64,000 bases of DNA from contig CM097885.1 of NCBI GenBank assembly GCA_044892525.1, positions 195,610,001 to 195,674,000 on the forward strand. The letters run 5' to 3'. The DNA is from Schmidtea polychroa (taxonomy: Eukaryota). This document shows, one piece after another, positions 1,211-61,466 of this stretch (the first letter of the stretch is position 1; every line of letters begins with the position of its first letter). The notes beneath the pieces were generated by a model that worked only from the letters and a program-made list of their open reading frames with translations, ran no database searches and was not told the origin of the DNA. Both the position numbers and the translations under genes were made by a program.

Positions 1211-4200
1211 CTAAATTGATGAATAAATATTTTAACTTTGAAAAATCTTTACTTTTGACTTTTTAATGTCGATGTGATAATCACCATTGACATGAGGTGA
1301 CCAAGAAGCCATTTTATAAAAGTTTCTGGTAATTGAGTGATCTAATTTCCGATAAAAGTCCATTTCATCGAAAGGGATTTCTTTTTCACTAAAAATTATT
1401 CTTTATTTATTGAAAATTTATGAGTAGCTAAAACTTGGATTTTAATAATAGTTNNNNNNNNNNNNNNNNNNNNNNNNNNNNNNNNNNNNNNNNNNNNNNN
1501 NNNNNNNNNNNNNNNNNNNNNNNNNNNNNNNNNNNNNNNNNNNNNNNNNNNNNNNNNNNNNNNNNNNNNNNNNNNNNNNNNNNNNNNNNNNNNNNNNNNN
1601 NNNNNNNNNNNNNNNNNNNNNNNNNNNNNNNNNNNNNNNNNNNNNNNNNNNNNNNNNNNNNNNNNNNNNNNNNNNNNNNNNNNNNNNNNNNNNNNNNNNN
1701 NNNNNNNNNNNNNNNNNNNNNNNNNNNNNNNNNNNNNNNNNNNNNNNNNNNNNNNNNNNNNNNNNNNNNNNNNNNNNNNNNNNNNNNNNNNNNNNNNNNN
1801 NNNNNNNNNNNNNNNNNNNNNNNNNNNNNNNNNNNNNNNNNNNNNNNNNNNNNNNNNNNNNNNNNNNNNNNNNNNNNNNNNNNNNNNNNNNNNNNNNNNN
1901 NNNNNNNNNNNNNNNNNNNNNNNNNNNNNNNNNNNNNNNNNNNNNNNNNNNNNNNNNNNNNNNNNNNNNNNNNNNNNNNNNNNNNNNNNNNNNNNNNNNN
2001 NNNNNNNNNNNNNNNNNNNNNNNNNNNNNNNNNNNNNNNNNNNNNNNNNNNNNNNNNNNNNNNNNNNNNNNNNNNNNNNNNNNNNNNNNNNNNNNNNNNN
2101 NNNNNNNNNNNNNNNNNNNNNNNNNNNNNNNNNNNNNNNNNNNNNNNNNNNNNNNNNNNNNNNNNNNNNNNNNNNNNNNNNNNNNNNNNNNNNNNNNNNN
2201 NNNNNNNNNNNNNNNNNNNNNNNNNNNNNNNNNNNNNNNNNNNNNNNNNNNNNNNGGATTGCCTCTGACTGGCAGTTATTTGGCTTTTTTCTATCGCGTC
2301 TGTGTGCGCGGTTTGGTCTTGGTGTGCGCACACAGGCGCGAGCAATGGATTGATTTTGTAAATCGGTAATTTGTTAATTGTAATTTTTAATTATATTAAG
2401 TTTTAATTAGATTTTGAATTGGTTTGTTTAAAACGGCGATTGTTGGAGAACTTTTAGAAATTGGATTTAAGTTGTGAATTCGATTAATTCTTGGTAGATT
2501 ATGAAATTAGATTTTTTTAAATTGGAAATTTTGTGGAATTTTTTAAAGATTTGTTTAAAATTGAATCATTTGAATTGGTAATGCGAGCGGGAAGTTTTGT
2601 GTATCATTTGGAATGTTTTGGTTGTCAAGAATGTAATCATAGAGGAGCTCATGGAATAATTGTTGTGGTTGATGTTACCGATCAAGATTCGTTTAACAAT
2701 GTTAAAAATAGGCTTAATGAAATCGATAGATATGCGAAAGGAAAAATTCCCGATAAATTAATTGTATCGATTGTCACGGAACTTTCACAGTTGTTGCCAT
2801 CATTTTTCATGATTATGCATGGGATCGAGTCTTCTAAATTCACAGATAAGTTCGTCAATAAAAACAACGATATTGTATTATGTATTCGTGAGGAAATAAT
2901 ATTGAATCATGCTATGTCGGATTTTTCAAATCGATTTGTTTGCAAAACGGAAATCAGAAATTATTTAATTGAAGAATTATCAGTTGTCCGAATTAAAACA
3001 TTTGGGTAAGTCGAAGTTTGAAATCGCGCGTGTGCTTCGACGGAAACTGCAACTGGACAAAATGATATTATTCAATAATGATCCACTGTCCTCTTTGGAA
3101 GAAAATAAAATTATCAACCATTCNNNNNNNNNNNNNNNNNNNNNNNNNNNNNNNNNNNNNNNNNNNNNNNNNNNNNNNNNNNNNNNNNNNNNNNNNNNNN
3201 NNNNNNNNNNNNNNNNNNNNNNNNNNNNNNNNNNNNNNNNNNNNNNNNNNNNNNNNNNNNNNNNNNNNNNNNNNNNNNNNNNNNNNNNNNNNNNNNNNNN
3301 NNNNNNNNNNNNNNNNNNNNNNNNNNNNNNNNNNNTGTGGAATTACATTTAGAAACTATGCATGTAAGCAAACTTGCAATAATTTTTTAGCTTACTTGTG
3401 CTCGGAAAATAATTCATTGAAATAAACGGCTTTCTGATCAGAATGATTATTTTTGAAAAAGTTTGAATTTATGGAAGACTCTTGACTGTTTGTTGCCTAG
3501 ATATTTTTAATAATTTAAAATTAAATATTTATTTAAATGAGAGTCACAAATCTTACAGGAAATCTAAGATTTTCCTGAAACAATTGATTAAGATCAATTT
3601 CATTTGTGGAATTTGGTTTCGAGTTCCGGTGGTTTTCAAGTGACGAACAAGTGCTCGTTGTGATATCGAGGCCAGATAAGCGAAGCATGCACGACTCACA
3701 TTGGTTTTGACGAATCTCTTCAAATGTTCGCTTGATGAATGTTGATAGTACTTTGTTCTGACAAGCCAGCTCCTCTATTTGACTCTATATATTAATAATA
3801 TATTCAATCCAATAATATATTAATAATATATTCATAATATATTAATAATATATTCAATCCAATAATATATTTAATATTGAAAATGTTTTTCAAATTTTGT
3901 TTAAAATAATACTTTGTAGCAAGTCAATGTGCAGAAATGTTCAGAATCAATTAGTAAAAAGTAACTATTTTCAGTTTGTATACAAGAATGGAAAACGGTA
4001 TCATTTGAAATGTGAATGACATCCGAGAATTCACTAACTTTTCTATAGAAAAACACAATTTCTTGCTTTTTTGTATCAAAAAATAATTATTAAAAACACG
4101 AATAAACTTTAGACTAATGAGAATTAAAATTTTTAGTTTATTTTTGGTTTGCATTCTAATACTTGAAAATACTTTGTCACAAGAATATGGATGAGGGATC

Positions 4201-7200
4201 GGATGAGGTATTAACAAATAATAGGAAACAAACTGCAAATGTCATTAATGAATTTATTCATTATTTTCACCATTAATCAACTATTTTCCCTGCGTATTTC
4301 CCTTTTCCATTTGAGACAGTAACCCTATATTTTATGTGCTTGTAGAGCAATTTTGTAAATTTATTTATTGTAAATTGATGTAAAAATTAATTTTATTATA
4401 TTTACAAGAGAAAAATGTAAAAATATTGTAATTCTATGAGAGTTGAATGCGAATGGAAATATTATTTGTTGATGGCCAAAAAGGCAGATGTCCAGTGAGA
4501 GAGTAGAAAAGTATAAAAAATCATAATTTATGAAAACAAAATTCAAACTCTTTTCCACTTTTTGACCTGTTAAATACAAAATTATAAGAATATTTGTTTG
4601 AAACTAAATTTTAGAGGAGAAAGTTTGAAAATATACAATCACATTTTCGAGTTTTGTTTCGTAAAATATTGACTATAGAAAGCTATACCAATTAAGTATC
4701 AATTATGATAATTTCCCATTGTAATTGTAAATATATCCGTCCAATTAAGCTCATTATCTTTTGATTTGATATAAAAAACTTATAATTGAAAACTTTTAAA
4801 AATCCAAATTTTATTACTACTATATAAGATAATATTTATGTTTTGTGTATTTAANNNNNNNNNNNNNNNNNNNNNNNNNNNNNNNNNNNNNNNNNNNNNN
4901 NNNNNNNNNNNNNNNNNNNNNNNNNNNNNNNNNNNNNNNNNNNNNNNNNNNNNNNNNNNNNNNNNNNNNNNNNNNNNNNNNNNNNNNNNAAATATATTTT
5001 TAAAATTAACTACAATTATATTTTACGCCATTTAACATAGATTTTAATGATGGAAATACATTTTTCCAGCAACTTAAAATTAATTCGAAATATGTTTAAC
5101 ACTTTTCACCAACTTTAACAAGAAACTCATAATTAGTTGAAACGAAGACAAAATGTCAAACATCGCACTTATATTGAATGCCAATTAACTTTCACGGTCG
5201 CCCAAACGAGCAAGTGTGAATGTCTTAGTATTGTTAGGAAAAATATTTTATCAATTAAAATTTTGACTCGGTGGGATGTTTTTTGGGAAAATAAAGACCG
5301 AACCGAAGACCTAGAAACTAAATATGGAATATGGTCCTAACATTTTCAAAATAAACAAATTTATAAATAAATATTTATAAATTTAGAACTATATTAAATT
5401 GAAATTCGTATCTGTTTTCTAATTAAATTTCCAAAAATATATTTATTACTTAAATATTTGAAATATGACGCTATTTAGTAATATAATTTTAGTATGATTA
5501 TTAGTAGTATTATTTATTTCATTTTTAAACTCTATATTAACTTTGTATGTTTGTTTGTTTGTATTTTATTTTCAATTTTATCAATATTTACAAAATTTCT
5601 TTCAAAATATTATTAAAATGTTCCTTTCAAAGTAATTTCTTTTTTTTCCTAATATTTAATATTTCATAGCATTGAGCATGCATATAGAAATGTTAATTTT
5701 GAGAGAATGTAAAAGAGTGNNNNNNNNNNNNNNNNNNNNNNNNNNNNNNNNNNNNNNNNNNNNNNNNNNNNNNNNNNNNNNNNNNNNNNNNNNNNNNNNN
5801 NNNNNNNNNNNNNNNNNNNNNNNNNNNNNNNNNNNNNNNNNNNNNNNNNNNNNNNNNNNNNNNNNNNNNNNNNNNTTTTGAAAATATTTATTTAATAATA
5901 CCGTGCAATCAGATTATATGGCCTTAATAATTGAGAAATCTCTCTCAATTAAATTGGCCAATCGGAGAATTAATTCCCAATTTACTCTTAGGGCTGAATT
6001 ATAATGGAACCCAAAGGAAAGCCTAATGAAAATAAGCTCAATCAGACTTAATAAGTATATTATCAGAGAAGTCATTGTGAAAAACCGTAGTTTATGTTGC
6101 AATCAAATCTCATTATCATAATTATCTTCAGCGACTTATTTGGTTAAAGTTGTTGAGAAAACTGAAATTGAAAGTCCATTTGAAATTCAGGCCAGATTCA
6201 CGAAAAGAGATATTCATGCTGGAGTTCGAATGCGGGCAATTAGTTTGATAAAATTTGCTTAATCTTACAATAATTTGACTGAAAAAATATTTTTTTCATA
6301 TTAAAATGAAATTTTCATTTGAAGAGAAATCGAACTTTTTAAATCAAAGAATTTTTTATCTGATAAAAATGTTTTGTGCTGATCGGTAATCTTAAAATTT
6401 AATTGGAATTTATAAACAAATTAACTTTCAATGATTAAGGAAATCTTTATCTGAAATCATTTGATCCTTAATTGGGAAAAAATTTTTATATATAATGCTA
6501 ATATCACTGAAATAAGATTCAAAATTGATAATAATTAATTAAGTAGTTTTGTCGTTCATTTTTCGTCGAAAATAAAAGCTGTAAAAACAATTATAAATAA
6601 TAAATAGTTAAACATACATTGCAACGATTTAATTATAAGAAAACGCCAATCAAACATTTTTTTCACGATATATTTCGACAGTTTTCCTGTCATCATCAGG
6701 TGGGATATAATAACTATATAAATTAAGGATTTTAAACAAATTTATTAATTTTATTAATTATATAAAAAAAATTTTATTTAATAAAGATATTTAATTATTT
6801 TTAAAAATTATAATTAAATTAATATATTATTTTTAAAATTTTAGCATTCAGAATTTAATTTAATAATTTAAAAAATTTTTTAATTATTTAATTTAACAAA
6901 CAACAATCAATACATACAATATACAAAAAAATTATTTATTTTAATAAAAAATAGGTATGTCTGATTTTAAAATTTTATTAAAAAATTTCGATAATTATTG
7001 GGAATGTGTGATTTGCGAGGCGTTGTTGATAGTCATTGAATCCGAAAATTAATGTGCAGAATGCAGTGAATACTTGTGTTTTAAATGTTTTTAAATAATT
7101 TTTTTTGTCGAAATATATAGTGAAAAAAATGTTTGATTGGCGTTTTCTTATAAATGATAACGAATAATTTGTAATCGAATATAAATAAAAATTTCATTTT

Positions 7201-10200
7201 TAAATTAATTTTTAAATTTTGCAAATAAATTATTTAATATTGAATTTTTAGAAATCTTTCAAATGTTGCTCTCAAATTTGACTATATTTTTCTTTGAGTT
7301 GTATTTTTATGGTTGTGAGAGAAGTTTCTTATTTTTTGATGGGAACTATCATCTGTTAGAAACTAGCGAACGCTGCGTCGACTTTGGAGACTTTCACTTT
7401 CTACATCTACCTCAGTGCATCTCATTTACCATTAAATACAGAATTAAGAAACTGGTTGACTGTATTGAAATAAATGTAACTTCTGAAACAAATAATTATA
7501 AATACATTTTTTAAAGGAATGAGAGAATTGTTTTAATACATTCTAGAATACTAGAATAATAGAAAAATTAAGTTCAAAATTTAAAATGAAAATTGTTTTT
7601 TTTCGTAGGTCAATTTTGCACTACTTTATTTTAGTTTTTGTTTATCCTATTTTTGTATTTTATGAGAATATAACAGCAAATTAGGCACATCTCGGTTCGT
7701 GTTTCTTATATTGATAACCAGTGTATTTTCTACGTTTGACACGCCTTTTTTATTATCACAAATGTAAGAAATTTGTCTTTCTGGTGCTGATGCAATAGAA
7801 TAAAATAGTGATGTAAAATATTTGAAAATTGCCTTAAATTGGCAAATGATATTAAAACAATTATTTCTATACACTTTATTCTAATATATATTTTACCAGT
7901 GAAAGGTAGACATCATTTTATTTAAACCAGAAGTTCTTAGTTAAAAACTTTTGAATATGCAACACAGTTGAAAAATATTTTTAAAAATTAATTAGTCTTT
8001 GAATTACTATTTTAATAATTCTAATAAATATCGTTTAACTATATTTTACAACACAAATATAAACAGTATTATTACAAACAACTTTAATAAAAAAATATTT
8101 ATTTAAAATTTAATAAATTTTATTCCAGACTATTTTTATTTTTAAAAGAATGTTAACAAAATGGTTTGTTCAACTTTCATTAAAAAAATTGTTCATTTAT
8201 TGATTTTTATTATTATTTTTATATTTGCATATTTTTGTGAGTTCTGTTTGTTAGATTCCAATTTATTTTACAGCTGTCACCAATAACATAAACATCAGTA
8301 ACTTTTATTTAATGTTATTATTTTATTTTTCCCACTGGTAAAATTTTGTAAATAATGATAAATATGAGATTTTTCTGTACTTATGACCCGCCTGACACTT
8401 AAATATTACTAAATATTTACGAAATAAAATGCTAATAATACAAATAAAAATTTGAAAATAACTAAAATTTTACTAAAATTGCTAAAAATTATGCTAATTA
8501 TCCGAAAGATTTAATTTTCATTTCATATATAGTAATTAGTTAATTAATTAAAAATATATTTAATGAATATAGTAATGAATATAGTAAAGAAAATGTATAG
8601 TTAATAGATTTTAACCTAAAAGCAAACATTAAAAAATTAAATAATTGTGTACAAGTACGCATTTCCAGGTATTCTTACCATCGACTGTCGGCCTGGTCTA
8701 ACGATATCTAAATCCTAAACATAAACTCTGATTTTTTTCCCTTTGGGGACTGGAAAATTTTATAATAAATTTTATAATAAAATAATAATGTGTTATTTGC
8801 ATCGATTAAAATTATATTATCAACATTTATAATTACCGTTATACGTACGTCAATAACTTTTTTTAATTAATTGCAAATATTATTTTGTATTTATTATCCA
8901 TTTACTAATTATAGGTAGAATATCGTTAAATATTATTTTTGTAAATATTTCTTTATATGTTTTATTTGATAATAACCAATGTACATACGTCCAGAAGTCC
9001 TTCTCTTTGCCATAGTTATGTATATCAATATTGTTACAGACATATGCTAGTATAACCAACAAGGAGATATGTTTATGTTACAACAGGCTTTGAGTTTTGA
9101 ACCCAAAGGTGGCAATATTCGGATCCTTCCTATAAAATTATATAGGTTTAGTTTGCATGTTCAAAATTGTGTTCAGCTGGAAATCCAAAACAAAAAAAGA
9201 TTCTCTATATTATAGATTCTTGGACCCGTCATATCCACTCCGAACATGAGTCGATTTGAACTCCATATGTACAATGGTTAGATATTTATTTCAATCTACA
9301 GCTCAAGTATTTGGCAAGAATGTTTTATGATCGTGGCAATATTTTTAAATTGCATTCTTATTTACTGATCCAATATTTATTTGGAAACTATTTGATACTA
9401 CTGGATAAAATCAGGATTGTTAAATATGTAATGTTTATATTTCATCAACCTTCAAGATGCCTGTTTCAAATTTATTGTATATTTTTGTAATGACATCATC
9501 TGTAAAAATTCACTATTTATAAAATTCTTAAAATTCTTCAATATTTTCTTCTTCGATCCCATGTTTATTAATTACCTCTTGATTTCATGTAGAAATAATC
9601 TATTTTTAAGTTTATAATTTTTTATAGATATTGAGAGCCGTCACGTTTTAGTAATTTCAAATAGCTTAATGTAATCTATAATTTATAATAAATTAAGGCA
9701 AAAATCTTTTCATAAAAATTAAATGTTGTTACTGGTGTAATTTTACGTTAGTTGTATAGGCGATATTTAATATCTTAAAATATATGTTTGTAGTGAGCCG
9801 TTACTCGGCTTTAACAAATTCTATATAAATATTATATACAAAAACGGAACGTAGCCTAAATGGGCGATCATTAACGAATAATGATCAATTAGAACACAAT
9901 TATGGCCAATAAAATATCACGTATAACAGGACATTAGTTGGAACATCTCAGTCTACTCTAACTCATTCCAAGAGTCAATCAAAATTCATGCAATCAGCTA
10001 ATAATTCTTATTATCATTCAGGCTCCATTAATCAATCTCAGACGAAGAAAGCAAATTCGATGACATGTTATTATTATCAAGATCAACTGTGTTCGACTCA
10101 TAATGGTTTTAGTGTTAGCTCTCATAAACCAACACCGTCATCCATTCCCCGTTCGCAATCACCACAATTTCACATGGGAAAGACACAGTCAAATTTAGTT

Positions 10201-13200
10201 CTGCAAAATAATTCTGTTTCAGAAGTAATTATGCCAAGTAGCGTAATATCTTGCATTGAAATTCATAAACATGTAAATTCACTAAATCTCTCCAATTGAG
10301 CCAAGATGTTGAAATGGTTCCGTATTTTCAAAGATATTCCATATGCTTATAATTCGCGAAATAATGTAATAAATCCTAACAATTATATGAACCCGAATAG
10401 ATTTGTTATCTAAAAAGTACATGAATCAAATATGTGTCCAAGAAATAACGAATGAATAATTTGATTGGGATATCTGAATAAATTGGGAGTTTGAAAATTA
10501 ATCGTTACTTTTTATGATCAGGAGTGAACTATGAAATTTAATTTTCGTCAATCAATGAATATTATATTTTTTTAGTTTATAATGATTTATGAAAAAATCA
10601 ATTTGATTATGTAAGTTAAAGTTGTTTTACTTTTACTTGTAAATTTGTAATTTGTAAATTGAAAATTTAAAAGGATCTGTGCTGGAAAATTGTAATTCAA
10701 AAATAAATATTAAGTAGAAATATTTTCTTGATTATTGCAATGTTTGCAAGTATTATTATAACCACAACAATGTTTTTATTAAACCAATGTACTACGATTA
10801 CAAATGCTATGCCATAAACCATTTTTAAAACTAAGTTTGGACTATAAGTATTTAAACATTAAAACCCACATACTAACGGCTATAATTTCCAGGCTATGTA
10901 ATTATTTGAATATGCATTATTTGAAATTTTTTTTTTCATTTGCAAACTAAACCTATGTAAATTTTTAAGTAAAATCAGAATATTGTTACCATTAAGTTCA
11001 AAACTTAAATCCTGTTGTATCAAAAACATAATCTCTTTGTAAATAGCAAATTAACATTTTCAATCAACTATTATTATAAATTGTGTCAGTACATAACGTG
11101 ATTTTTATTACGGTTGTTTTTGAATTATTATTAATACTTTTATTATTACTTTTAACCCTTAATTGCTTTGGTTAGCAAATTTGCAACATACCAAAATTTC
11201 ACGTTTAAATCGCCTAAAATAAATAAGAACTAACCATTTCATAGTGTTGCTTGTGAGCTACAAAGCTATTTAACGGATTTAGTTCATTTTACTTTAGATT
11301 TTTTAAATTATTTTTATAATAATATATTAATTAATTAATATATTAATTAATTTTATTCAAAAAAAATTTAAAAAAATCATTCAATTGAGGGTTAATTTAT
11401 TTACTGCCAAAATAATTTATTACTATAATTTACACATAACATCATATAAAAATACATCTGGAAATGTACTATTAATAAAAAGTTAGTCTCATCCATAATT
11501 TGTATACTTAATTTATTATTGTATTTTTAGTAGCATTACTAAAATTATTCAACAATTTCATATTGTCAATATTGTATTAAACAACAAAACTCCTACAGAA
11601 ATTGAAATTCCTAAATTGGAAGCTAGTAAAAGTAAAAACTACAAACTTAGGTGCCCGATTTACACTTGTAATGTTGTTTTTTCAGTTGGAGAATTTCATG
11701 ATTATTGTATGTTTATTTTAAATTATTTATTTAAATTATTGAAAAGTCATAAATCAAATGATTAAATGTTTTTGTGATTTTTCATTAAAACTGAACATTA
11801 TTTATTGAATATACAATATTTTTTATTTGAAAAACTGCCCTTTTCTGAAGTCTAATTATTTAAACAATATTCATTCTTATTCAGCAATTATAATTTCAAG
11901 TACAAATAGCACCCATTAGGGCCAAAGAGAGGGAGGAGACGGGTATTTTTCCCTGGGTCCGGTTTTGAAAGGAGGCCCGGAGAGGTGCACTAAAATTTTT
12001 AATCGTAACAGAAAAACTTACAGAATTACAACTGTTGATTTACTTCTTTTCGGATGGTAAATCAACATTTTTTCCGTTGATTCTGACCTTAAAGATTTTT
12101 CGATGGATTCACCTTTGATTTATCGTTAAATGACGATTTTTAAATTTTTTTAAAATTCAAAATAACTGTAAAATTATGTATTTACTCTCTTTTAAACATC
12201 AAATCAAATATGAAAACTTTCAAATTAATGAAAAATTCATTGATTTAAAATTTTTGTAAAGATTTTCAGAAAACCTTTGAATCAATGGATTTCACCGCTG
12301 ATTTTTTTCCTGTGTGTATCTAAAATGATAAATTGTCGGTGTCGACCAGAGATTATACGTAACTATGTAAAACATGTCTATTGTTCTCATTTGCAAAGGT
12401 GTTGTAGAAAAAAAAATCAGATTTAGTAGGGACAAAAAAAACCAATTGTCCGTTCAACCGAAAGTATGCTTGCATACAAACAAAATATATAACAATTTAG
12501 ATTTAAAATAAAATTATAACAATCAATAAAGGGCCAGCGTTAATCATTTTACCGGGGCCCGGCCAGGCTTTCCACGGCCCTGGCACACACACATATATTA
12601 ATATTTTTCATTTATTTTTAAAAAAACATATATAAATATAAACTTTGAAGACTTACAAAATAATCATTATTTTCTACCCAAAACTAAGATAAGATAAGAT
12701 ACATTAAGCACACAAGTTTAATTTGGAAAACTGAAAAAATGTATCAAATCACAACAAATAAATAAAAGTAATTGAAAAAATAACACGAGTGATAAATAAT
12801 AATCTTCATTTATCAATTGCACAAATAATTATATTGTGTATAAAATTAATTTTTAAATGTTGCTGTTGTAGTTGCTGTAAAACTGTAAAAACATTCGAAT
12901 GAGCTTTAAATCTTTAAAATACGAGAAAAAATAGATTTTAGAAGTTCAAAGGACGTTTAGTTAGTTCTTTTTAATAAATANNNNNNNNNNNNNNNNNNNN
13001 NNNNNNNNNNNNNNNNNNNNNNNNNNNNNNNNNNNNNNNNNNNNNNNNNNNNNNNNNNNNNNNNNNNNNNNNNNNNNNNNNNNNNNNNNNNNNNNNNNNN
13101 NNNNNNNNNNNNNNNNNNNNNNNNNNNNNNNNNNNNNNNNNNNNNNNNNNNNNNNAAATAATAACAAAAATTTAAAAATAATTTATTTTCCAAAGACGAA

Positions 13201-53000: not shown

Positions 53001-53661
53001 TTTATATTGGAAGATACAAATGCTATCAAGATTTTATATTTTGCAATTGTCATTTTTATTGCAATCTTTTTTACACTGGGCTGGATTTACCAGAAGAACA
53101 ACAACAATTTTGATATTTATAAACGAGTGATTAAAATTAAAACTAATTATGGTTATAAGTTTATAAAAGCAGAAAAAAACGGAAAACTAGGATTTTGAGA
53201 AAAGACGTGAATTATTTTTAAATAAAAAAGTTATAAATGTGAAATTAAAATTAATTCTTTTAAAGTTTTCTGGAGTTTTACAATAAAAGTTTTCATATAT
53301 TTAGAGTATATTTGAAAATATATAATTAAAACCAAATTGCGTATTTATAATAATTGTCCTGAAATTTTAGAATTAATAATTTTTTGCAATTCCATAATTT
53401 TATTTGAAAATATTTCTTTCCAAATTTGTGTAAATATTTACTAAATATAATTTCGTTAATTTATGCTAATATCTCTTACTTCTGCAAATTGCCAATTTCG
53501 GCAATTTGGGTATATTGCCTGAAAAATAATAAAATTTTAATCTTGTCAAAATTCAGCATTTGACGAGACATTTTTATTCTCTTTGGATAGAACAAAATAT
53601 AATGCCTTTACTTTGTCTTTAGAGTTTGTTGTTTATAAAAGATTTCTTTAAATTTTTTAAC

Positions 53662-53696
<35 letters not shown>

Positions 53697-54132
53697 TTTC
53701 AATCAAAATCTTAGCTTTGACTAAAATTTAAAATTTGACTTTGATTTAAAATTTGTCTTTTTTTAAGATGCTTTTAAAATATAAATTATTATAATTAGAT
53801 TAAATTTAAGTAAATAAAAACTTAACAACTTTTAGGAGTTAAAATACATTTATATTTAATAAGTTATAATGTTTTTATTTTTTTTTTAAATGAGTAATAT
53901 AAGATTTCCTATTTTCTGTTTGACTTAATTTTTAGTTTAAATTTAAAAAATTTTATTTATTTCATTTAATCAAAATTTTAAACCAATGAAAATGAATTGA
54001 AAAGAAAGATAAAAAAGCATTTGAAAATTGCAACAGTGGAATTCTGAGAATTTGAAAAAGATAATATAATAATCTAAATATTTTTCACTTAATATACAAT
54101 TATTTGCAAGACCTATCTTATCATATACTTGT

Positions 54133-54213
<81 letters not shown>

Positions 54214-57200
54214 TTAAATAATTAATTTCAAGAAATTAGAATATCATTAATATTATTAATTAATTATTATAATTTACTGAATGCTTCTTTATATCATTTA
54301 TTAGGAAGCCTTAAGTCAAATTAATTTCAATGTGAGCTAAGAGACAATGCTTAATTTTAACTGAGTATCCGATAAATTATTGTTGATAAAAGGCCCCACT
54401 GATAAAATAGACACTGAAATAGCTCTCAATGAATAGATTTGTTGTTGCAATTAATGGAAGATTTTCATTTATCGCTCCAGCAATTGCTAATGTGGATGTG
54501 ACAATTCTATTTTTCTATTTCAAAAAAAAGTCTTAAATGAGATTGAAAACTAATTTTGGTAAAATAAATTTGTAGATATGAAAGCAATGGATTATTTTGA
54601 CAATTAAAACATTTTTAGCCGACGCTGATCGTGTATATTTTTATTATTATTGCTATAGAAATTTGTTTGTTATAATTGTGTTGACTTGAATTTATTAAAT
54701 GTATTAACTCACTTTTTTGCGACTTCTTAAATTGACATAGACCCCGTCGATGGAAATTTTAAAGTAGACTCGTTCCTTTTTCACGGCTTTCGCTTTGAAT
54801 TCAAACTGAAATTAAAAGTTGGCTTAAATTTTAATAAAATTATTTTCTTACAAAAATATCATAAGTAATAAAATTAATATTTTTAAAAGATTTTATTGGA
54901 TAATTTTAAATTAATTTTTTTAGTTTTCTATTTGAACATTTATCTGTGAAAAAATAGAATTTGTTATATTTTATAAATAAAAGCTTTATTGTAAATTTCA
55001 TTTCACTGAATGGATTTAACTAGGAATTTAATTAAATTAATTTTACAAAAATTACGAATGAAAATTATAAATGAAAATTGTAAATTGAAAATCTCAACTG
55101 GAATAAGATTATAATATGTCCATGATTATATAAATAAAATCAAGGTGGTTATATATGAACAAAAACAAGGGACCTAGATGACTACTCCCCTTGCTAGATG
55201 GTCTGTCCTAAGAGAAAGATTATTTTATGTTTACTGCTTTTCAAAATAAAAAAAATATTGTAGTTGAATTTGGATTCCTGAGTTAAGTAAATCCAAGATT
55301 TAGTAATAGAGTTTCTGTTCTTTCGACGTTTTGTATTTCTCGAAATGAAATTTCCCGAGAAATCGAGAAAGTTTTAAGACAATGTCGAGCGAAGAAGTTT
55401 TTAAAACTAGTCTAAACTTATAAATTCCTTTGAAAATTTTAATTTAACTTTTTCAAACTATGTCCAAGGAGGAAAATGAAACTTAATCATATTTTAATAT
55501 TTAAAATTCATGAACTAACCGATTTAAACAAATAAGTATTCTATTATTTATCATAAAGCATTCCTTTTTTATTGTTAATAAAAACAAAAANNNNNNNNNN
55601 NNNNNNNNNNNNNNNNNNNNNNNNNNNNNNNNNNNNNNNNNNNNNNNNNNNNNNNNNNNNNNNNNNNNNNNNNNNNNNNNNNNNNNNNNNNNNNNNNNNN
55701 NNNNNNNNNNNNNNNNNNNNNNNNNNNNNNNNNNATTTAAATTATTTGTCAAGCTTACAGTAATATTTTTCAGTCAAAAAAGTTTTCTTCAATCTTGCAA
55801 CTACTTCAACTCTATTAAACCCATTTTTGAATGTTTTGTCTCTCTCAAGACCTTTATATAAACAAAATTATTTTAGAAAATATTTCATTAAAATAATTGC
55901 AAAAACAAGATTTTAAAAGTTATTTTAAAAAGTAAATATCATTTAAATTCAGAATTTTACCCATTGTTTTTTATGTATTATTTTAAAAGCAAAAATTGAC
56001 TTAAAAAAGATTTTCCGTCGATGTGCTTTTAAACAAAAATGTACCTAATTAATGCAGTTTTTTGAATTATTTCTCCTCCTGGTCTTTGAAGATATTTAGC
56101 CAATTAAGAAGAAATATTTTTCATTTTCTTTGTTTTACGACGATAATGATTGCTCATATTTTCCACTCCCCATTTTTTATAGAATACTTAGAAATTAATG
56201 TGTTAACAAAAAGTCATTTACTCTGGTGTTTTAATTACAAAATTAATTTATGTTACATAAACAAGAAGACTGGAATTTTCAAACCCAGCTACAATAGAAA
56301 TGCCTTTTTCCAATATTTTTAAAAAAGATTTTAAAAGATAAAAAACATATTTCAATTTCTTTTTCTTCATTTCAAGTTATAGATTTATCATGATTTTTTG
56401 GCATGGTCTTTTTAAAGTATCTGTAAAAAAGGGCTGTTTTGTAAATGCAGTTTTAATAAAAAATATTGATTTAAAATCTAAAATGAAAATAAAACAAAAT
56501 TGAAAATGAAAATAATCGTTTAGTGTTGGAAAGTAAAACACAATGTGTGATTTTTTTGGAAATTTAAAATGGCAAATATGAAATTGTTTTTATCCAAATA
56601 TTTTAAACCCATTATTTCACTGTTGATGTTAGATTGCTTTTATTTTAGAAATTTAGGTTTGTATGTTTTAAGGGTTTCCTTTCGTTTAGTTTGATTATAT
56701 TTGAGAGACGTTTTCCTGATTTTATACCGTCGGTCGAGAAAAAGGCTGTATGTTGTTTGATGAAAGATAAGGTTGATGCAGTTATTGATGCAGTGACTGC
56801 AACGCTGAACTCTGGTGCTATATTTTTAAAAACATCATACGGAATTAAAATTTAAACAAAACATTTATTTTTGACATAAATTAATTAATAATAATCAGTT
56901 ATTATTTTCTGCAAGAAAAAAAAAGTTTTTTTAACCAAAATTAATACTCCCTCTGTCCAAAAATGGTAGTGCAGTTTGACTTTAAATCGTTATTTCTTTT
57001 ATATTCAACAGTGATACTTAAAATGCAGTTTTGTTATTTGTTCAATCAATAAAATAAAATTATTTAATGTGTTTTTACTGTAAAAGGTTTTACAAAACCG
57101 TTCAATTTTTAATATTCTCTATTGACAATCATTTTGGGAAAAAGGCTAAAATGCAAATGGATTATTATTTTTGGACAGAGGGAATAAAAGATATTGTGCA

Positions 57201-60200
57201 TTAAAGGGTTAAATATCAATAAATGCCTTTGTAGATATTCTGTTTGGAAAATAATGTCTTCATTTTATTTATTTTGCTTATATTTTTAATATTGAAAATA
57301 AATGACCCTTAGGTCTACTGAAAAATAGCTGATGTTGCTGTGGTGCAGAAAGAATTTGTTATGCCTGCTTTAACAGAATGAGCAAAATTGATGAATTATT
57401 TTTAAATATATAAATAACATTATAATTAATATAACTAATTAACTTGTCGGAGAAATTGAATTTCTTTAAAAACACGATTAAATTTCAAATCAATTTTCAG
57501 TCATAAATAATCGCCTGTTTCCCAAGGGAATGTGAGCGAGAGCAATGCAAAAAGATAACCGAACACAAATTCCAGTGCAATATGATTTATAATACATTAT
57601 AATATGTCGAATAATAAAGTATTTTCATTTGATAAAAATGATCCCAAAATGTTCTTTATTGGTATGGCAGTCAAAAAATGCAGTGAAGAATTAAAATGTT
57701 TCTCGGTTTCAAATGTTCGTCAATTATGCCGATTTACGAGTCCATTGACGAGAAAAGTGCATGCCTTTGAAAGCTATCGAGTTAATAGAGAAACCTTTCG
57801 TATTATTTGATTCTTTTAAAGTTGTTAATTGTCCATGATAAAATATTAAGAAATTTCATAAAAGTAATTTTATTGGCAAAGATTGAATATTTTATCGAGA
57901 GGTTTTAAAAAGTGTTCTCTGATGACATATCTCACCTTTCCGGCCTTTACTGTGCGTTTAACATAAGTACATTTTCAAGTATTCATAAAATAATATTCTT
58001 AGTTCACAGGTTTATTGAGCCCATAAAGTTGCTTTTGTCTATTATAAAATTACTTAAATTCGTATCACAACTTATTAACACCTTTAAATCCGAAAAATAA
58101 CCAACTTTGAGCAGGGACGGCTCTACCATATACGCGAATTAGGCGGCCGCCTAGGGTGCAAAAATATTTTTCTAAATTATTTCTCGACTATATAAAAAAA
58201 AATTATTTATTATGATATCTTTAATTTTTCTCTTTCACAATTGTCACTCCTATATTATTTTGTACTATTATTTATGTATTTTGAAACTGCATATATTATT
58301 ATATTTTGAAATGGACAAATTTTTTATTTCACTCAATAAAAGATTTATTACGAAATACCTACTCGTTGAATTAAGAAATTTAAATTATTAAAACATAATG
58401 TTTCAGTTGGCATTCTTTAAGGTAGGCGCTTCATAAAAATTTGCCTAGGACGCTAGGCTTGGACAAAATTTCTTAAGCCGCCCCTGACTCTGAGAAGCAT
58501 ATGAAGATATTTTATTTTAACACTAGAAAGTTCTTTAAATTGGGAGAAAATGCGAAAGAGATATAAAGTTTTTGGATTGTCATATTGAGACATTATTTCA
58601 TGATTTGTCACCATCATTTTATAGTATTATTTGTTCATGAAGGATTTTGAAACGGCCTTAATTCTGATATTTTTGTCTTTTCAGAACCTTAAATTAATAA
58701 CACGTGGTAATCTACATATAAAAAAACATTCAATTAAATTTTGAGGAAGAAAGCAAATATTGCATTAATATTTGCAAGAATAAAAACAAAATTATTTGCA
58801 AATTAGCAGCCGGGTTTTTTGTAGGATTCACAATCAGTGCAATATAAAGATTCTATTTCATGATATATTGTATTTGTAAATTGAGAATGAAAAATATTAT
58901 GATCATGTAATATAAAATCGGATACAGATCTTGCATCTACAATAATATACACAAACATCATTAAGTAGGTTAGCGATAAATTTAACAATTTCTCTCATCT
59001 ATGTTAAAATCTTTATGCCATTCCTTCTCCAAAATTAAGATTACATATTTGCATCCAAGGCCGTAACAAGGCATTATTGCGCCCTGTGCGGTTCATATAT
59101 ATGGCACCCCCAACTTACGAATTCAAAACAGTCTACTATAATCATTATAATGTTCATGTTAAGATTGTTGACTATGTACTCATCTCTAGCTATTATATAA
59201 TAGGTAGTAATGCTCTTAAAATTCTGTTGCTAATTGAAAAAATGACAGGAACCCATTTTGTGGATTAACATTTTATAAAATACACACCTACGAAGGCACG
59301 CTAATGGACCAGTCCAACCAGTAATGTTAAAGATAGACTACCTAGGATGTCGTTTTTTTTCGTTCATGTCATTTATTATTTTTTATTTATATTTCTTCAT
59401 TTTTTGGTGGTATTAAAAAATTGGTACATCCCTGTGTAACTGCACTGCTCGCACCACCCTTGTTATGGCCCTGTTGACATCCACAAATGTTAACATAAGT
59501 TATATTGGGAAGTAAAATTCTGCACTAGTCTGTTCCTATTGAAAAATTAAAGTTATCAAAGTATTGGTATGGTTAATTATTAGTTTGTCGTGTCTGTGTG
59601 CGTTCTCTGTTTACATTTGAGATTGGGTTTGTATGCGCACACAGACGCGATTAGTGTCATTTTTTGTGAATTAATTATCGGTTTTCGCGTCTGTGTGCGC
59701 TTTTTACTTTGTTGGATGGATTTGTGTGCGCACACAGACGCGGACAATTGTGAATATTATGATTTGAGTTTTTTGTTCGGTTAAGTGATATCGATTTTTG
59801 GGTTTTTGATTTCTGTCGATTTTGGAAATATGATTCAAATTCTGGAAGTTTTTAGAATTGATTTATAATTTTGGTAATTCGGGTTGGTTCGAGGAATTTT
59901 TGTTTAAAAGATTACTTTTTATACCAGTTTTGAATTTTTGGCCTTAGTGAAATATGGAAGATAATGAATGTTTGATATGTCGTATTTCAATGAGCAATAT
60001 AGCGAAGAGATGTCTTTTCAGCAGCGAAACTCGTCCATGTGATCGTGGCTCAACAAGATCGTTGCAAATTATTAACGGAAGTAATGTAAATGTCATAGAT
60101 AATCAAGATTTTTATGAATTCGTTTATATTTCAAAACTTCTAATTGACATTAATTCAATTTTTCAAAGTTTATCAAAACGATTGGAAATCAACGATTTAA

Positions 60201-61466
60201 TTTCTGTAAATCATGAAATGACAGAAGAGGAACTCCAAGATATGTGTATGAAATTTCCCCAAAAATTTAAAGATATTCGTAAATTATCTGAAACCATTTA
60301 TGACATTAGCGATAAAAAGATAAACTTGCTAACTTATGAATGTGATATTCTATTTAATCGAGTTCTTAAAAGGATCAACACAATTCAAATGTTTATTAGC
60401 CAAAGTGTTGAACAATTATCCAATGTTTCAAATTCAATCATGGCTCAATCTCAAGTTATTGGACACGTTAGATGGTTTAACAAACAATGGTTTTGTACAA
60501 ATAAAGCGTGTGATGCGATTAATTACAAAGAAATTCCTCTGATGTGTCTTAGACGAAAACAGGTAAATTAATGAGTTTATTAATTAAAACTTTATTTGCA
60601 TAATGATTAAGCATTTCTGGAATTTTCTTTCTAAGTCCTTACTTGTGCAAGTTACAACATTTTCTGTTACTATTCTTCACCATATACATTCGAAGATGCC
60701 GGTAATTAGTATAATTACTATAATTAGTAATCATGTTAATATCAATACTTAAATCCAATACGGTCTGTACTTACATTTTGCCCTAGCTTCACTCGTGGCT
60801 TGTCACATCATTTACTATTTACATTTTTTATTCCTATTTTTTGACCTAGTGTTAAATACGGCACTGCGAGTGTAAGGTATATAAATAATTATATAAAAAG
60901 AATTTAGCTATAAGCGTTTAACTTGTTAACTAGGAAATAATATATAAGCAACAGTATATATGTATATAAAGATAACGTCCAAAAAGAGTTAATGGTAAGG
61001 AATTTATGTTGATGTAATTGAGAGTAAATTATTTAAACTTATTAGTTTATTGTAAAATTACTTTTTTTAATGTAAAACTTTATTCGTGCCAGATATAGAT
61101 TACAATCTTGAACTATTTGAAGAGTACTTTACTAACTAGCAATGAACGGAAGTTGGGAATCACTTTATTAAATAAAGACAAAGATAAAGAAGTAAAATTA
61201 ATTAAAATCTAATTTAAAGTTTTCCGTATGTCATGAAACCAAGGTCAGAACTTAGTAAATAAATTTATTCCCACTATGTTGCACTGTATAAATGAACTAA
61301 GTATGTTTTAAATGTTTGGATTTAATGTTCAAATTAGTCACTTTTAGTTAGACATAAAAATATTTTAAATATTTTAAAATAGAAAAATTGTTACCCTGAT
61401 ACGTCTCATTGCTGATACAATTTCCAGGCGATTCTGAGGTCTAGCGACATCCATTGACCCGATATA
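1115..61466 (-). CDS. NOS1AP: CAPON/NOS1AP (DYC-1-like) PTB-domain adaptor, 5'-partial spliced CDS: join 61466-61395, 54805-54713, 36097-35982, 35930-35822, 32699-32372, 21008-20881, 15830-15639, 3784-3557, 3496-3396, 1388-1253, 1210-1115
   Basis: All 10 introns are GT-AG and phases match (0,0,2,0,1,0,0,0,2,0); total 1599 nt open to TAA. Peptides [24 protein letters not shown] / [16 protein letters not shown] / [32 protein letters not shown] / [16 protein letters not shown] and [21 protein letters not shown] match the CAPON PTB and coiled-coil regions as I recall them. Confidence 0.93.
1253..1388 (-). CDS. NOS1AP: CAPON exon (136 nt, 2-0) [45 protein letters not shown]
   Basis: tttttag acceptor, gtaaag donor, phase matches previous exon. 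Confidence 0.8.
2294..2341 (+). promoter_or_regulatory. TGTGTGCG hairpin cassette head, copy A
   Basis: TCGCGTCTGTGTGCG (2294-2308) / CGCACACAGGCGCGA (2327-2341), 18-nt spacer. The inverted repeat is certain; a promoter role is inferred. Confidence 0.5.
2533..3123 (+). pseudogene. Chimeric ORF A: LMO-type LIM fragment fused in frame to a Rab1 fragment plus unidentified segments; frameshift near 2990
   Basis: [25 protein letters not shown] (2569-2643) joined directly to [31 protein letters not shown] (2644-2736); GTG start; continues in another frame ([25 protein letters not shown]) into the gap. Confidence 0.8.
3396..3496 (-). CDS. NOS1AP: CAPON exon (101 nt, 0-2) ATNSQESS...ELFSEH(N)
   Basis: ctag acceptor after a 60-bp intron, gtaagc donor, open frame. 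Confidence 0.8.
3557..3784 (-). CDS. NOS1AP: CAPON exon (228 nt, 0-0) [19 protein letters not shown]...ENLRFP
   Basis: atatag acceptor, gtaag donor; aligns to ARVHQLLLQNKDMLQHI. Confidence 0.85.
3786..3872. repeat. AT-rich minisatellite abutting the CAPON exon acceptor
   Basis: attaataatatattcaatccaataatatat twice plus a partial unit. Confidence 0.8.
5522..5719 (+). mobile_element. Internally deleted copy of the 32945 HINE-like element
   Basis: Shares the 5' end, microsatellite and about 150-bp 3' segment; runs into an N-gap. Confidence 0.65.
6631..7155. mobile_element. Penelope-like pseudo-LTR remnant with inverted partial copy
   Basis: About 50-bp inverted arms 6631-6680 and 7107-7155; the left arm runs into the hammerhead, the right arm is truncated before the CTGATGA core. 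Confidence 0.55.
6664..6702 (-). ncRNA. Minimal type I hammerhead ribozyme (Penelope-type)
   Basis: cac-CTGATGA-t-gacag-gaaaa-ctgtc-GAAA-tatat-C-gtg: full core, 5-bp stem II, palindromic ATATAT stem III, 3-bp stem I. Confidence 0.75.
8950..9300 (-). mobile_element. Possible second Merlin remnant
   Basis: GVQIDSC, FCFG and EGSEYCHLW fragments in the expected order; heavily decayed. Confidence 0.3.
9794..10413 (+). pseudogene. Ser/Asn/Gln-rich decayed exon or reading frame, donor gene unknown
   Basis: One frame of about 206 codons after a tttgtag acceptor, with only 3 internal stops (9826, 9910, 10297); includes listed ORF 9988..10299. Confidence 0.5.
11917..12582. mobile_element. hAT-type MITE (CAGGGCC termini)
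   Basis: Termini tagggcc / ggccctg; imperfect 8-bp TSD gcacccat / gcacacac. Confidence 0.7.
14529..14561 (+). ncRNA. Minimal hammerhead ribozyme, U3-A8 core variant
   Basis: tcac-TTGAGAA-a-gac-agt-gcc-GAAA-att-C-gtga; one stem II mismatch. Confidence 0.55.
14651..14688. repeat. (AT)19 microsatellite immediately 5' of cassette B
   Basis: Direct reading. Confidence 0.95.
14692..14752 (+). promoter_or_regulatory. TGTGTGCG hairpin cassette head, copy B
   Basis: TCGCGTCTGTGTGCG (14692-14706) / CGCACACAAACGCG (14739-14752), 32-nt spacer, followed by GACAATTGT as in copy C2. Confidence 0.5.
14891..15303 (+). pseudogene. ORF B: single WD40-repeat-like fragment plus unidentified tail, frameshift near 15120
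   Basis: [42 protein letters not shown] has GH...W WD40 spacing; overlapping ORFs 14891..15187 and 15121..15303. Confidence 0.6.
15639..15830 (-). CDS. NOS1AP: CAPON exon (192 nt, 0-0) LSEMNSN...[22 protein letters not shown]
   Basis: ctctag acceptor, gtgagt donor; aligns to AQVHLLKDQLAAEAAARLEAQ coiled coil. Confidence 0.88.
17980..18773. mobile_element. pogo/Tigger-type MITE
   Basis: Perfect 23-bp TIR CAGTAAACCCTCCAACTGCGCGG, TA on both flanks. Confidence 0.92.
20100..20520 (+). mobile_element. Possible pogo-like transposase remnant (internally deleted)
   Basis: [19 protein letters not shown] (HTH-like) and [22 protein letters not shown] (resembles pogo C-terminal region), with stops. 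Confidence 0.35.
20881..21008 (-). CDS. NOS1AP: CAPON exon (128 nt, 1-0) (T)[42 protein letters not shown]
   Basis: Strong tttcttttcag acceptor, gtaaat donor, open frame; supplies exactly the phase 1-to-0 bridge required. No recognisable homology. Confidence 0.72.
21497..21565. repeat. Fold-back palindrome of the pseudo-LTR tail
   Basis: 30-bp arms with 2 mismatches around the loop aaaaacatc; arm sequence matches the tail after the 14529 and 30313 ribozymes. Confidence 0.8.
22456..22517. repeat. Second fold-back palindrome of the same tail
   Basis: attgactatgaatcagtaaa ... tttactgattcatagtcaat around aaaaaaacatc. Confidence 0.8.
22985..23360 (-). mobile_element. Helitron 3' end: PIF1-type helicase C-terminus and terminal hairpin
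   Basis: [39 protein letters not shown]-stop (helicase motif VI), then cccgggcgaaattggg hairpin remnant at 23009-22994. Confidence 0.72.
25852..26693 (+). mobile_element. Non-autonomous hAT element retaining the transposase N-terminal zinc finger
   Basis: TIR tagtcctaccat / atggcagggata; TSD gttattga / gttataga; subterminal gtcccgg repeats; ORF 26213..26485 with [29 protein letters not shown] (second Cys changed to Ser). Confidence 0.88.
26879..27867 (+). mobile_element. Solo LTR (989 bp)
   Basis: TGTTG...CAACA termini, ATAT 4-bp TSD, CCAAT about 27619, TATA 27653, AATAAA 27762, short gagacgattt tandem in U3. Confidence 0.82.
28536..29431 (+). mobile_element. MULE/Mutator-like non-autonomous element
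   Basis: Perfect 10-bp flanking repeat tatattttat; long imperfect TIRs built of GTCACTTAA / TTAAGTGAC units; internal decayed coding tail (KKVGRPSK...KRQKT-stop). Confidence 0.8.
30313..30345 (-). ncRNA. Minimal hammerhead ribozyme, U3-A8 core variant
   Basis: tcac-TTGAAAA-a-ggc-agt-gcc-GAAA-att-C-gtga; perfect stems I and II, palindromic AATT stem III. Confidence 0.62.
31560..31960 (-). mobile_element. Possible Gypsy RT N-terminal remnant
   Basis: NDFDDIFSG ... KKNGKLTF resembles EF.DVFS ... KKDGKLRFCVDY; many stops. Confidence 0.35.
32372..32699 (-). CDS. NOS1AP: CAPON exon (328 nt, 0-1) [19 protein letters not shown]...KEGKR
   Basis: gaaag acceptor, gtaaa donor; end of PTB followed by Ser-rich linker; matches listed ORF 32343..32699. 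Confidence 0.93.
32945..33304 (+). mobile_element. DINE-1/HINE-like (Helentron-associated) element
   Basis: Inverted ends tttttaaactctc / gagagttttaaaaa, internal (TGTA/TGTT) microsatellite, core ...cggatcgagctgaaattcggca...; second internally deleted copy at 5522. Confidence 0.65.
33600..33856 (+). mobile_element. Gypsy-like gag remnant, left part (interrupted by Merlin)
   Basis: Decayed frame ending [10 protein letters not shown], read as the start of a zinc knuckle that continues after the Merlin. Confidence 0.45.
33857..34984 (-). mobile_element. Merlin (IS1016/ISXO2-like) transposon, decayed transposase about 34880-34030
   Basis: [75 protein letters not shown] in one frame with stops; about 40-bp near-perfect TIR core; no clear TSD. 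Confidence 0.88.
34985..35548 (+). mobile_element. Gypsy-like remnant: CCHC knuckle, aspartic protease, integrase-like fragment
   Basis: [15 protein letters not shown]; [12 protein letters not shown] (degenerate DTG) and YDVILGRN; [22 protein letters not shown]; RT and RNase H missing. Confidence 0.7.
35822..35930 (-). CDS. NOS1AP: CAPON exon (109 nt, 2-0) [36 protein letters not shown]
   Basis: tttag acceptor after a 51-bp intron, gtact donor; PTB core motif. Confidence 0.96.
35982..36097 (-). CDS. NOS1AP: CAPON exon (116 nt, 0-2) TPIKLRLSQ...LLLMHHPIY(R)
   Basis: ttcag acceptor, gtaat donor; ends in the conserved HPIYR. Confidence 0.9.
36781..36877. repeat. 97-nt imperfect fold-back hairpin
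   Basis: 37-bp arms attttcaaagtagttttgattgattaactagaaatat / atatttctagttcaacaaccaaaactacattgaaaat. Confidence 0.8.
39024..40120 (-). mobile_element. IS630/Tc1-superfamily DD34E transposon, decayed transposase about 39985-39105
   Basis: HTH region ([11 protein letters not shown]), IYIDEMG..YGRSLIG, (D to N)[19 protein letters not shown] with 34 residues spacing after fixing two frameshifts; degenerate CAGGGTT / CAGAGTT termini (boundaries uncertain). Confidence 0.85.
42338..42974. mobile_element. hAT-type MITE (TAGGGTGACCA-like termini)
   Basis: TIR taagatgacca / tggtcacatta; TSD agcaattt / agcaatat; gtcccg subterminal repeats. Confidence 0.82.
44697..44870 (+). mobile_element. Truncated pogo/Tigger-type MITE related to 17980
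   Basis: Shares ccctc..cggtagatacgttcca and ataggttcca; no second TIR found. Confidence 0.6.
47236..47488. mobile_element. hAT-type MITE, same family as 11917
   Basis: Shared 3' end ggggcccggcc..ctctcgacggcc; TSD gtaatagg / gtaatggg. Confidence 0.7.
48561..48766. mobile_element. Inverted pair of hammerhead-bearing pseudo-LTR fragments
   Basis: About 70-bp inverted arms (48561-48630 / 48694-48766); second core mutated to CTGACAA. Confidence 0.6.
48585..48623 (-). ncRNA. Minimal type I hammerhead ribozyme, same family as 6664
   Basis: CTGACGA-t-gatag-tgatg-ctatc-GAAA-tatat-A-gtg; stem II covaries with the 6664 copy; stem I weak. Confidence 0.65.
49348..49606. mobile_element. Stowaway-like Tc1/mariner MITE
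   Basis: 30-bp TIR CTCCCTCTGTCCAAAA(A/G)TGATAGTCCAGTT with 1 mismatch, TA flanks. Confidence 0.92.
54134..54212. repeat. (TAA)n microsatellite, about 26 units
   Basis: Direct reading; a shorter (TAA)n lies at about 53662-53693. Confidence 0.95.
54713..54805 (-). CDS. NOS1AP: CAPON exon (93 nt, 0-0) [31 protein letters not shown]
   Basis: tttcag acceptor, gtgagt donor; matches [24 protein letters not shown]. Confidence 0.95.
56947..57184. mobile_element. Second Stowaway-like MITE, opposite orientation
   Basis: CTCCCTCTGTCCAAAAAT / ATTTTTGGACAGAGGGAA, TA flanks; left end matches the reverse complement of the 49606 end. Confidence 0.88.
58112..58486. mobile_element. hAT-type MITE
   Basis: TIR cagggacggct / agccgcccctg; TSD actttgag / actctgag. 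Confidence 0.88.
59056..59473. mobile_element. hAT-type MITE
   Basis: 16-bp TIR caaggccgtaacaagg / ccttgttatggccctg; imperfect TSD tttgcatc / ttgacatc. Confidence 0.82.
59588..59742 (+). promoter_or_regulatory. TGTGTGCG hairpin cassette head, tandem copies C1 and C2
   Basis: C1 59588-59602 / 59636-59650; C2 59685-59699 / 59729-59742; the C2 spacer is homologous to the copy B spacer. Confidence 0.5.
59954..60571 (+). CDS. ORF C: uninterrupted 205-aa ORF of unknown function (N-terminal CxxC, central helical segment, GHVRWFN motif)
   Basis: ATG start, longest gap-free ORF in the window; CAG|GTAAAT donor at 60563 just before the stop. Confidence 0.6.
   Translation: MEDNECLICRISMSNIAKRCLFSSETRPCDRGSTRSLQIINGSNVNVIDNQDFYEFVYISKLLIDINSIFQSLSKRLEINDLISVNHEMTEEELQDMCMKFPQKFKDIRKLSETIYDISDKKINLLTYECDILFNRVLKRINTIQMFISQSVEQLSNVSNSIMAQSQVIGHVRWFNKQWFCTNKACDAINYKEIPLMCLRRKQVN
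61395..61466 (-). CDS. NOS1AP: CAPON exon (72 nt, phase 0-0) [24 protein letters not shown]
   Basis: ttaag acceptor, gtaac donor; near-identity to CAPON [24 protein letters not shown]. Confidence 0.95.

Follow-up and report, generated by a model that had tools for sequence, protein, structure and literature searches.

Helentrons carry inverted repeats of 12-16 nt (PMC11417382, PMC4067079). In elements of the HINE/DINE-1 type (HLE2), subterminal inverted repeats of 13-15 nt, which can themselves be palindromic (PMC4067079; also PMC11417382), are accompanied by a palindrome of 5-10 nt near the 3' end, by terminal T-runs and associated microsatellites, and by T-rich targets (PMC4067079). Canonical Helitrons (HLE1) have a 3' hairpin with a CTRR motif within about 10-12 nt and insert between A and T (PMC11417382, PMC5148889). 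In Fusarium oxysporum, mimp ('miniature Impala'), a miniature inverted-repeat transposable element (MITE) derived from the transposon impala, is always present in effector-gene promoters, yet its deletion had no direct effect on expression (PMC3599309). Here we describe a hairpin repeat, called the head in the following, which occurs four times in a stretch of 64,000 nucleotides from Schmidtea polychroa (assembly GCA_044892525.1, contig CM097885.1, positions 195,610,001 to 195,674,000, forward strand; referred to as the window). We tentatively propose, with confidence somewhat short of even, that the head is a palindromic dispersed repeat which serves as the promoter-proximal region of lineage-specific genes on the plus strand, or lies inside that region.

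The four CpG-rich inverted repeats listed in an initial annotation (starting at 2294, 14692, 59588 and 59685) were recovered with 15-nt arms, 0-2 mismatches and spacers of 18-33 nt (Table 1). A search of the window with the 15-nt arm gave eight matches at 0-2 mismatches, which make up the four inverted pairs, against 0.00 expected from 100 shuffles; no extra arm appeared in the window at 3 mismatches. All four heads have the same orientation and are spread over three loci. A covariance model built from the four heads and run unfiltered scored them at 73-93 bits, all on the plus strand. Since it found the four heads and thereafter noise below 13 bits, there are no decayed copies of the head in the window. 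The top non-head match was a mini-palindrome at 46072-46117, which contains the arm core with a 1-nt spacer and was not significant (12.6 bits, E = 0.35). As single-stranded DNA, each head folded into a hairpin of −16 to −20 kcal/mol (z −3.9 to −7.6 versus shuffles). The 5' boundary is sharp and common to all four heads, and the two arms with a third half-site in the loop form a CpG-rich spot within DNA of 24% GC.

Table 1. Positions of the heads, leaders, open reading frames (ORFs) and host-gene exons in the window.
Feature	Positions	Strand	Remarks
Head A	2294-2341	+	Arms 2294-2308 and 2327-2341; 18-nt loop; 38 nt past a gap
Leader A	2342-2580	+	G/T-rich, C-poor; upstream ATGs inside
ORF A, candidate first coding exon	2581-3006	+	142 codons from ATG; stop 3007-3009 inside GTAAGT donor
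Head B	14692-14753	+	32-nt loop; right arm within perfect palindrome; (TA)24 directly upstream
Leader B	14754-14890	+	G/T-rich; first ~30 nt homologous to tail of C2
ORF B, then second open frame	14891-15303	+	ORF B 14891-15187, 98 amino acids; other-phase frame 15118-15303
Minus-strand internal exon	15640-15830	-	Well-formed; polypyrimidine consensus acceptor, CAG/GTGAGT donor; 336 nt from end of cassette B
PTB/PID-domain host gene, two exons and intron between	32343-35929	-	Exons 35819-35929 and 32343-32741
Head C1	59588-59650	+	33-nt loop; no separate ORF; tail of 34 nt ends in T and adjoins head C2
Head C2	59685-59743	+	29-nt loop; 88.6% identity to head B over 67-70 nt
Leader C	59744-59953	+	G/T-rich, C-poor; upstream ATGs inside
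ORF C, candidate first coding exon	59954-60562	+	203 codons to CAG/GTAAAT donor; full ORF 205 codons plus stop, ends at 60571

The arms differed at 5 of 120 positions, whereas the loops of C1 and C2 were far more diverged, yet still homologous. Two of the differences between arms would be wobble pairs on the plus strand and one would be a wobble pair on the minus strand; compensatory changes numbered zero. It is the arm sequence that is conserved, not just the pairing, and, given the greater divergence of the loops, the arms are the constrained part of the head. A palindrome around the right arm of B and C2, also reported in the initial annotation, is indeed present; it is 14 nt long, perfect in both copies, and formed together with the 3' end of the loop. 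The head unit can be broken down into three half-sites, of which two are direct and one is inverted. Each of the four heads has a loop rich in G/T, always on the same strand. Homology connects the loops of B, C1 and C2 (z 2.9-5.9 versus shuffles); the loop of A is short and could not be aligned. Since the B, C1 and C2 hairpins have a common descent that extends to their loops, they constitute a dispersed repeat family and not merely a convergent motif. C2 is nearer in sequence to B than to its neighbor C1.

At all three loci an ORF on the same strand starts 137-240 nt after the head, and the two longest ATG ORFs of the window on either strand (205 and 142 codons) start 210-240 nt past a head. 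The recurrence of heads at the 5' side of ORFs, as initially annotated, is thus linked to them far beyond chance: with thresholds picked post hoc, the probability of finding, at each of three loci, an ORF of 98 or more codons with its start 100-260 nt downstream is about 2e-6. The stop codon of ORF A lies inside one of only two plus-strand GGTAAGT sites, and ORF C continues for two codons beyond one of two AGGTAAA sites; the exon ends of both ORFs are in phase 0 at consensus 5' splice sites. Coding periodicity, with GC content falling from the first to the third codon position (GC1 > GC2 > GC3), was seen in ORFs A and C, not in ORF B. ORFs A and C look like first coding exons of spliced genes. 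Since these ORFs end exactly at 5' splice sites, the heads would delimit, on the 5' side, spliced plus-strand exons that are real or were so until recently. The heads recur, their arms are constrained, their orientation relative to coding first exons is fixed, as is their distance from them, and splice donors follow; the fixed orientation and narrow distance that one would look for in a promoter-proximal element were found at three of three loci.

The G/T-rich, C-poor character ascribed to the leaders was borne out, with 41 G and 7 C in leader A, 22 and 11 in leader B and 43 and 14 in leader C, counted after C2. In G>C skew they rank with the most extreme 150-nt windows of the 64 kb, and they contain 47% T; the skew is strand-specific and begins inside the loop. 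Local alignment tests for homology between leaders were negative. In gapped tests the similarity of B and C2 ran through a tail of ~30 nt ending in a T-run (z 4.2), and faintly beyond. The right-hand boundary of the repeat is soft because this similarity continues into tail and leader. In all four copies the right arm is followed at 28-35 nt by a T-run, that of C1 abutting C2, in a window with 38% T. A palindrome of 8-10 nt directly follows the right arm in A, B and C2, not in C1, B and C2 being non-independent copies. Elsewhere in the window, a purine-rich, C-poor plus-strand stretch at 26800-27600, with a 12-nt tandem repeat at 27362-27400, contains leader-like words, yet has neither a head before it nor an ORF after it.

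The three ORFs are mutually unrelated, as had been noted; we found no similarity among them. The claim that each carries a different host-gene fragment holds for ORF A only. Its residues 9-37 correspond to the middle of a LIM domain (E = 1e-5) and residues 35-76 to the middle of a Ras-family G domain (E = 6e-6), both above the Pfam cut-off. The second piece is Rab1 (E = 2e-12), with similarity falling sharply after ~31 residues. Half a LIM domain is thus joined in frame and in sense orientation to a piece of Rab1, with sharp boundaries. This chimera cannot work as either domain, the parts needed for a working domain being absent from both pieces. Among 5.8 billion protein clusters none combined LIM with Rab1, and ORF A matched only Rab1 proteins, over ~30% of its length. 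The matches of ORF B, WD40-like (E = 0.05) and LeuRS-like (E = 0.56), were not significant, and ORF C had no homologue in protein and Pfam searches. AlphaFold models from single sequences were unusable, with predicted local distance difference test (pLDDT) scores of 43 for ORF A and 35 for ORF C. The annotated start, (A/G)TG GAA, was found as ATG GAA in ORFs B and C; the GTG of ORF A is at 2533 and its first ATG at 2581.

The promoter-proximal role that we favor could work as follows. The repeat unit, a hairpin of ~50-65 nt with a tail of ~30 nt, would sit at the 5' edge of plus-strand transcription units. A sequence-specific factor would bind the CpG-rich island made up of its two 15-nt arms and the third half-site, located at the loop's 3' end. 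Transcription would start at or beside the head, pass through a G/T-rich 5' leader of 137-240 nt and run on into a first coding exon, which would be spliced at the 5' splice site where it ends. Genes headed in this way would be lineage-specific, and the ORFs would be neighbors of the repeat, not its cargo. The head is probably of transposon origin; its layout suggests that it may have begun as a miniature non-autonomous Helentron-type (HINE/DINE-1-like) element.

Several observations weigh against this proposal. The sample consists of three loci in one window. ORF B is short, has a weak coding signal and no clear donor, and no downstream exons of the ORFs were found within the window. The upstream ATGs in leaders A and C are awkward for efficient translation. 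A G>C leader is not a generic signature of transcription, given that GC skew near transcription start sites in invertebrates is reported to be C-biased on the coding strand (PMC3315797). Finally, conserved arms with variable interiors are also seen in transposon subfamilies without a host function.

The strongest competitor, which we nevertheless consider unlikely, is a passive miniature element, Helentron-type or MITE-like, that lands preferentially in T-rich, open 5' regions of genes and plays no role in the expression of the neighboring ORFs. The common descent of the B, C1 and C2 hairpins, loops included, is what such an element would leave behind, as are the close identity of B and C2 (Table 1) at a distance of 45 kb and the head-to-tail arrangement of C1 and C2, 97 nt apart. 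Arm length and layout resemble those of HINE elements, whose preference for T-rich targets (PMC4067079) would suit the T content of the leaders, and mimp provides a precedent for an element located in promoters whose deletion had no direct effect (PMC3599309). However, no consistent target-site duplication (TSD) was found at any choice of head boundary tried, and the bases preceding the heads are A, C, G and T, without an A-T junction or a consistent target dinucleotide. Decayed heads are absent from the 64 kb, while other MITE families there do show decay. Orientation was the same and ORF distance similar at all three loci, and the weak similarity of B and C2 that reaches into the leader leaves the element without a sharp boundary. 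Capture, as put forward in the initial annotation, appears improbable. Here the head would be the conserved terminus of a rolling-circle or Pack-type element, and head, leader and ORF would travel together as a cassette. The in-frame LIM/Rab1 chimera with its sharp boundaries, for which no chimeric relative came up among the 5.8 billion, would fit, since the capture of gene fragments is known from Helitron-like elements, some of which possess a 5' stem-loop (PMC11417382, PMC5148889); DINE-1 has been associated with gene duplications (PMC4067079). Yet the ORFs lie outside the inverted-repeat pair, and the cassettes share neither a second terminus nor a flank, but the head alone. CT[AG][AG] was absent from the 15 nt after the right arm of all four heads, and no Rep/helicase was present among the ORFs of the 64-kb window. 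ORFs B and C lack significant gene pieces, and consensus donors stand at the ends of ORFs A and C, as they do in ordinary first exons. The annotation itself had seen no second terminus, TSD or poly(A) tail, and we found none either; cassette B in particular had neither a poly(A) tail nor a TSD. With neither a second terminus nor a TSD, a poly(A) tail or a Rep/helicase found in the window, and with ORFs that the repeat pair does not enclose, capture is unsupported; recognizable gene pieces occur in one ORF of three. The alternative offered alongside it, in which the head would be the promoter motif of young nested genes, agrees with the data no less well.

There is also little to be said for a variant in which the head, as a mobile promoter module of ~60-100 nt, would start transcription of its flanks upon landing and thereby seed new spliced chimeric genes, the LIM-Rab1 ORF being an example, or assemble them by capture; we regard it as a long shot. 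If true, it would amount to a eukaryotic 'portable promoter' driving gene birth. Each head might instead be an alternative promoter of one long plus-strand gene, and each ORF a variable first exon spliced to common exons beyond the window. The uniform orientation of the heads, the two ORFs in phase 0 at strong donors and the failure to find downstream exons inside the window would all agree with such an arrangement, but the three first exons are unrelated, unlike those of known variable-first-exon clusters, ORF B has no donor, and cassette A lies on an island contig whose placement is uncertain. We consider it quite improbable. Least likely of all, and in our view hardly credible, is an origin at the RNA level, with the head as a 5'-terminal RNA hairpin and the cassettes as retro-copies of template-switched chimeric transcripts. 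The sharp 5' boundary of all four heads, the sense orientation of all recognized gene pieces and the start of the skew inside the loop might point in this direction; the lack of a detectable poly(A) tail or TSD, the consensus splice donors at the ORF ends and the absence of a match of the head to a known RNA family point away from it. A chimeric retrogene formed by template switching was rejected on similar grounds: cassette B lacks both a poly(A) tail and a TSD, and ORFs A and C end at splice donors.

What the promoter-proximal proposal would mean depends on how general the head is. As a common 5' mark of lineage-specific genes, it would provide a tangible example of a module of transposon origin that is linked with the emergence of chimeric genes. 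Were it just a small repeat favoring 5' regions, it would be an ordinary addition to the repeat catalogue.

On the searches made, the head is a new sequence family, with no Rfam family, published string or match in AT-rich metagenomes or viruses, although of a kind already known, namely short elements with inverted repeats that lie promoter-side of genes specific to a lineage. In Rfam, no head reached a gathering score, and relaxed matches were far below threshold and driven by simple repeats. An exact-string search of the literature for the arm and palindrome gave no match. The arm core with a spacer of 12-40 nt had 0 matches in viral contigs and 26 in metagenomes, none of them AT-rich relatives: 23 are GC-rich palindromes (59-75% GC) and three lie in contigs with simple (TG/CA)-type repeats (48-54% GC). 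Several of these metagenome loci (L003, L006, L012-L016, L018 and L023-L026) belong to a palindromic intergenic repeat family on contigs of 71-74% GC, which is unrelated to the window; that it has the 11-nt arm core in common is a coincidence brought about by the search pattern.

Other identities of the head were considered and dropped. A microRNA precursor was ruled out by the stem, which at 15-17 bp is too short, and a spliced-leader or small-RNA gene by the lack of an Rfam match. The loops differ among copies, which excluded an assembly or adapter artefact. Units 12-45 kb apart in an animal intron context do not suit an integron-like attC cassette, and a replication origin was discarded as no opposite skew is found upstream. 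A Pack-MULE or Pack-type element would have its gene pieces between the termini, which is not the case here, where the repeat pair ends 137-240 nt before the ORFs begin. Inverted repeats are present as in a classical MITE, but a TSD and a transposase partner with the same ends were not found in the window. All four heads begin with TC, the canonical start of HLE1 Helitrons, a trivial likeness to which we give low weight; a canonical Helitron was rejected for want of CTRR, an A-T site and, in the window, Rep/helicase.

The linkage to a Rep/helicase or transposase that had been suggested as a check did not materialize in the window. The only transposase remnants are Tc1/Tc3-like and sub-threshold, and no arm lies near them. 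One, at 39360-39940 (minus strand), is a decayed transposase whose Tc3-type helix-turn-helix and DDE_3 matches remained below threshold; the Tc1-like ORF of the window had no matches in the protein search. Two further decayed remnants without a Pfam match, at 43471-43782 (minus strand) and 62280-62492 (plus strand), are by eye only what we take to be mariner-like. Neither the ORFs of the window nor the transposon remnants had a record in protein collections, by exact look-up or by search.

The window has 24.4% GC, a CpG observed/expected ratio of 1.0 and 12 runs of N. Its DNA is mostly non-coding. The argument never crosses an N run, and ORFs spanning a gap were discarded as artefacts. Head A, leader A and ORF A are held by an 868-bp island (2256-3123) with a gap on both sides, so that the position and orientation of cassette A rest on scaffolding alone. 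The cassettes had been described as intronic and antisense to CAPON. A PTB/PID-domain gene does lie on the minus strand, and only cassette B could be shown to lie beside a minus-strand exon. Both PTB/PID exons match a PID protein from an NCBI assembly. The nearest annotated relative of this gene has its best match among solved structures in the PTB domain of ANKS1B, not in CAPON, and the name 'CAPON', being unverified, may be wrong. The nearest relative is a 958-bp contig from a forest-soil metagenome, to which the PTB/PID exons have 81% amino acid identity in local tblastn, 83% in phmmer and 78% nucleotide identity.

The window contains other repeats. A 55-nt MITE end that begins with TA and goes on into a C/T-rich terminus is present in two opposite copies, at 49554-49608 and 56945-56999, which are 93% complementary; they resemble the Stowaway-type ends of mariner-derived MITEs. 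A palindromic MITE family with 79-91% identity is found at 22426-22547, 30244-30345, 14529-14629 and 21466-21557, and one of its fragments sits just upstream of (TA)24 and head B. An element at 9068-11030 has inverted ends of 99 nt (79% complementary) around ~1.8 kb with an ORF of 103 amino acids without a Pfam match. A dispersed duplicate of ~150 nt (5563-5714 and 33117-33277) shows 85-96% identity over a distance of 27.5 kb. Tandem repeats are located at 3787-3876 (28-nt unit, 3.4 copies), 54134-54222 ((TAA)29) and 63677-63893 (101-nt unit, 1.9 copies).

Compared with the described systems, the chimeric ORF A resembles the products of Helitron or Pack-type capture, where chimeric ORFs arise from unrelated host-gene pieces. 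There, however, the pieces lie between two conserved termini, whereas here they are outside the repeat pair, and no second end, CTRR or TSD was found at the heads. HLE2-reverse elements or proto-Helentrons have a stem-loop at the 5' end of the element (PMC11417382), as does the head, but are 5-11 kb long with RepHel genes and an inverted repeat at the far end, none of which was seen in the window. The comparison with Helentrons made in the initial annotation is a reasonable structural lead, as the 15-nt arms fall within the published range of 12-16 nt (PMC11417382, PMC4067079). In its layout the head comes nearest to miniature Helentron derivatives of the HINE/DINE-1 (HLE2) type, which we treat as a lead and not as membership. 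The likeness extends to arm length, to the palindromic right arm (as in mite HINEs), to (TA)24 next to head B and to the head-to-tail pair C1-C2, and perhaps to the small palindrome after the right arm in three of four heads and to the T-runs. The heads differ in having 18-33 nt between the arms, against a core of hundreds of bp, in a 3' end inferred from T-runs only, and in the absence of a Helentron partner from the window. The mimp elements differ in being recognized MITEs, while no TSD or partner was found here, and in belonging to a fungus, as opposed to an AT-rich animal in which orientation and ORF distance are apparently fixed. In both systems a short inverted-repeat element lies upstream of unrelated lineage-specific genes, and in the fungus it predicts them even though they share no similarity (PMC3599309). 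If the head turns out to be a common 5' mark of such genes, it would likewise permit gene finding that does not depend on similarity, as mimp does in Fusarium.

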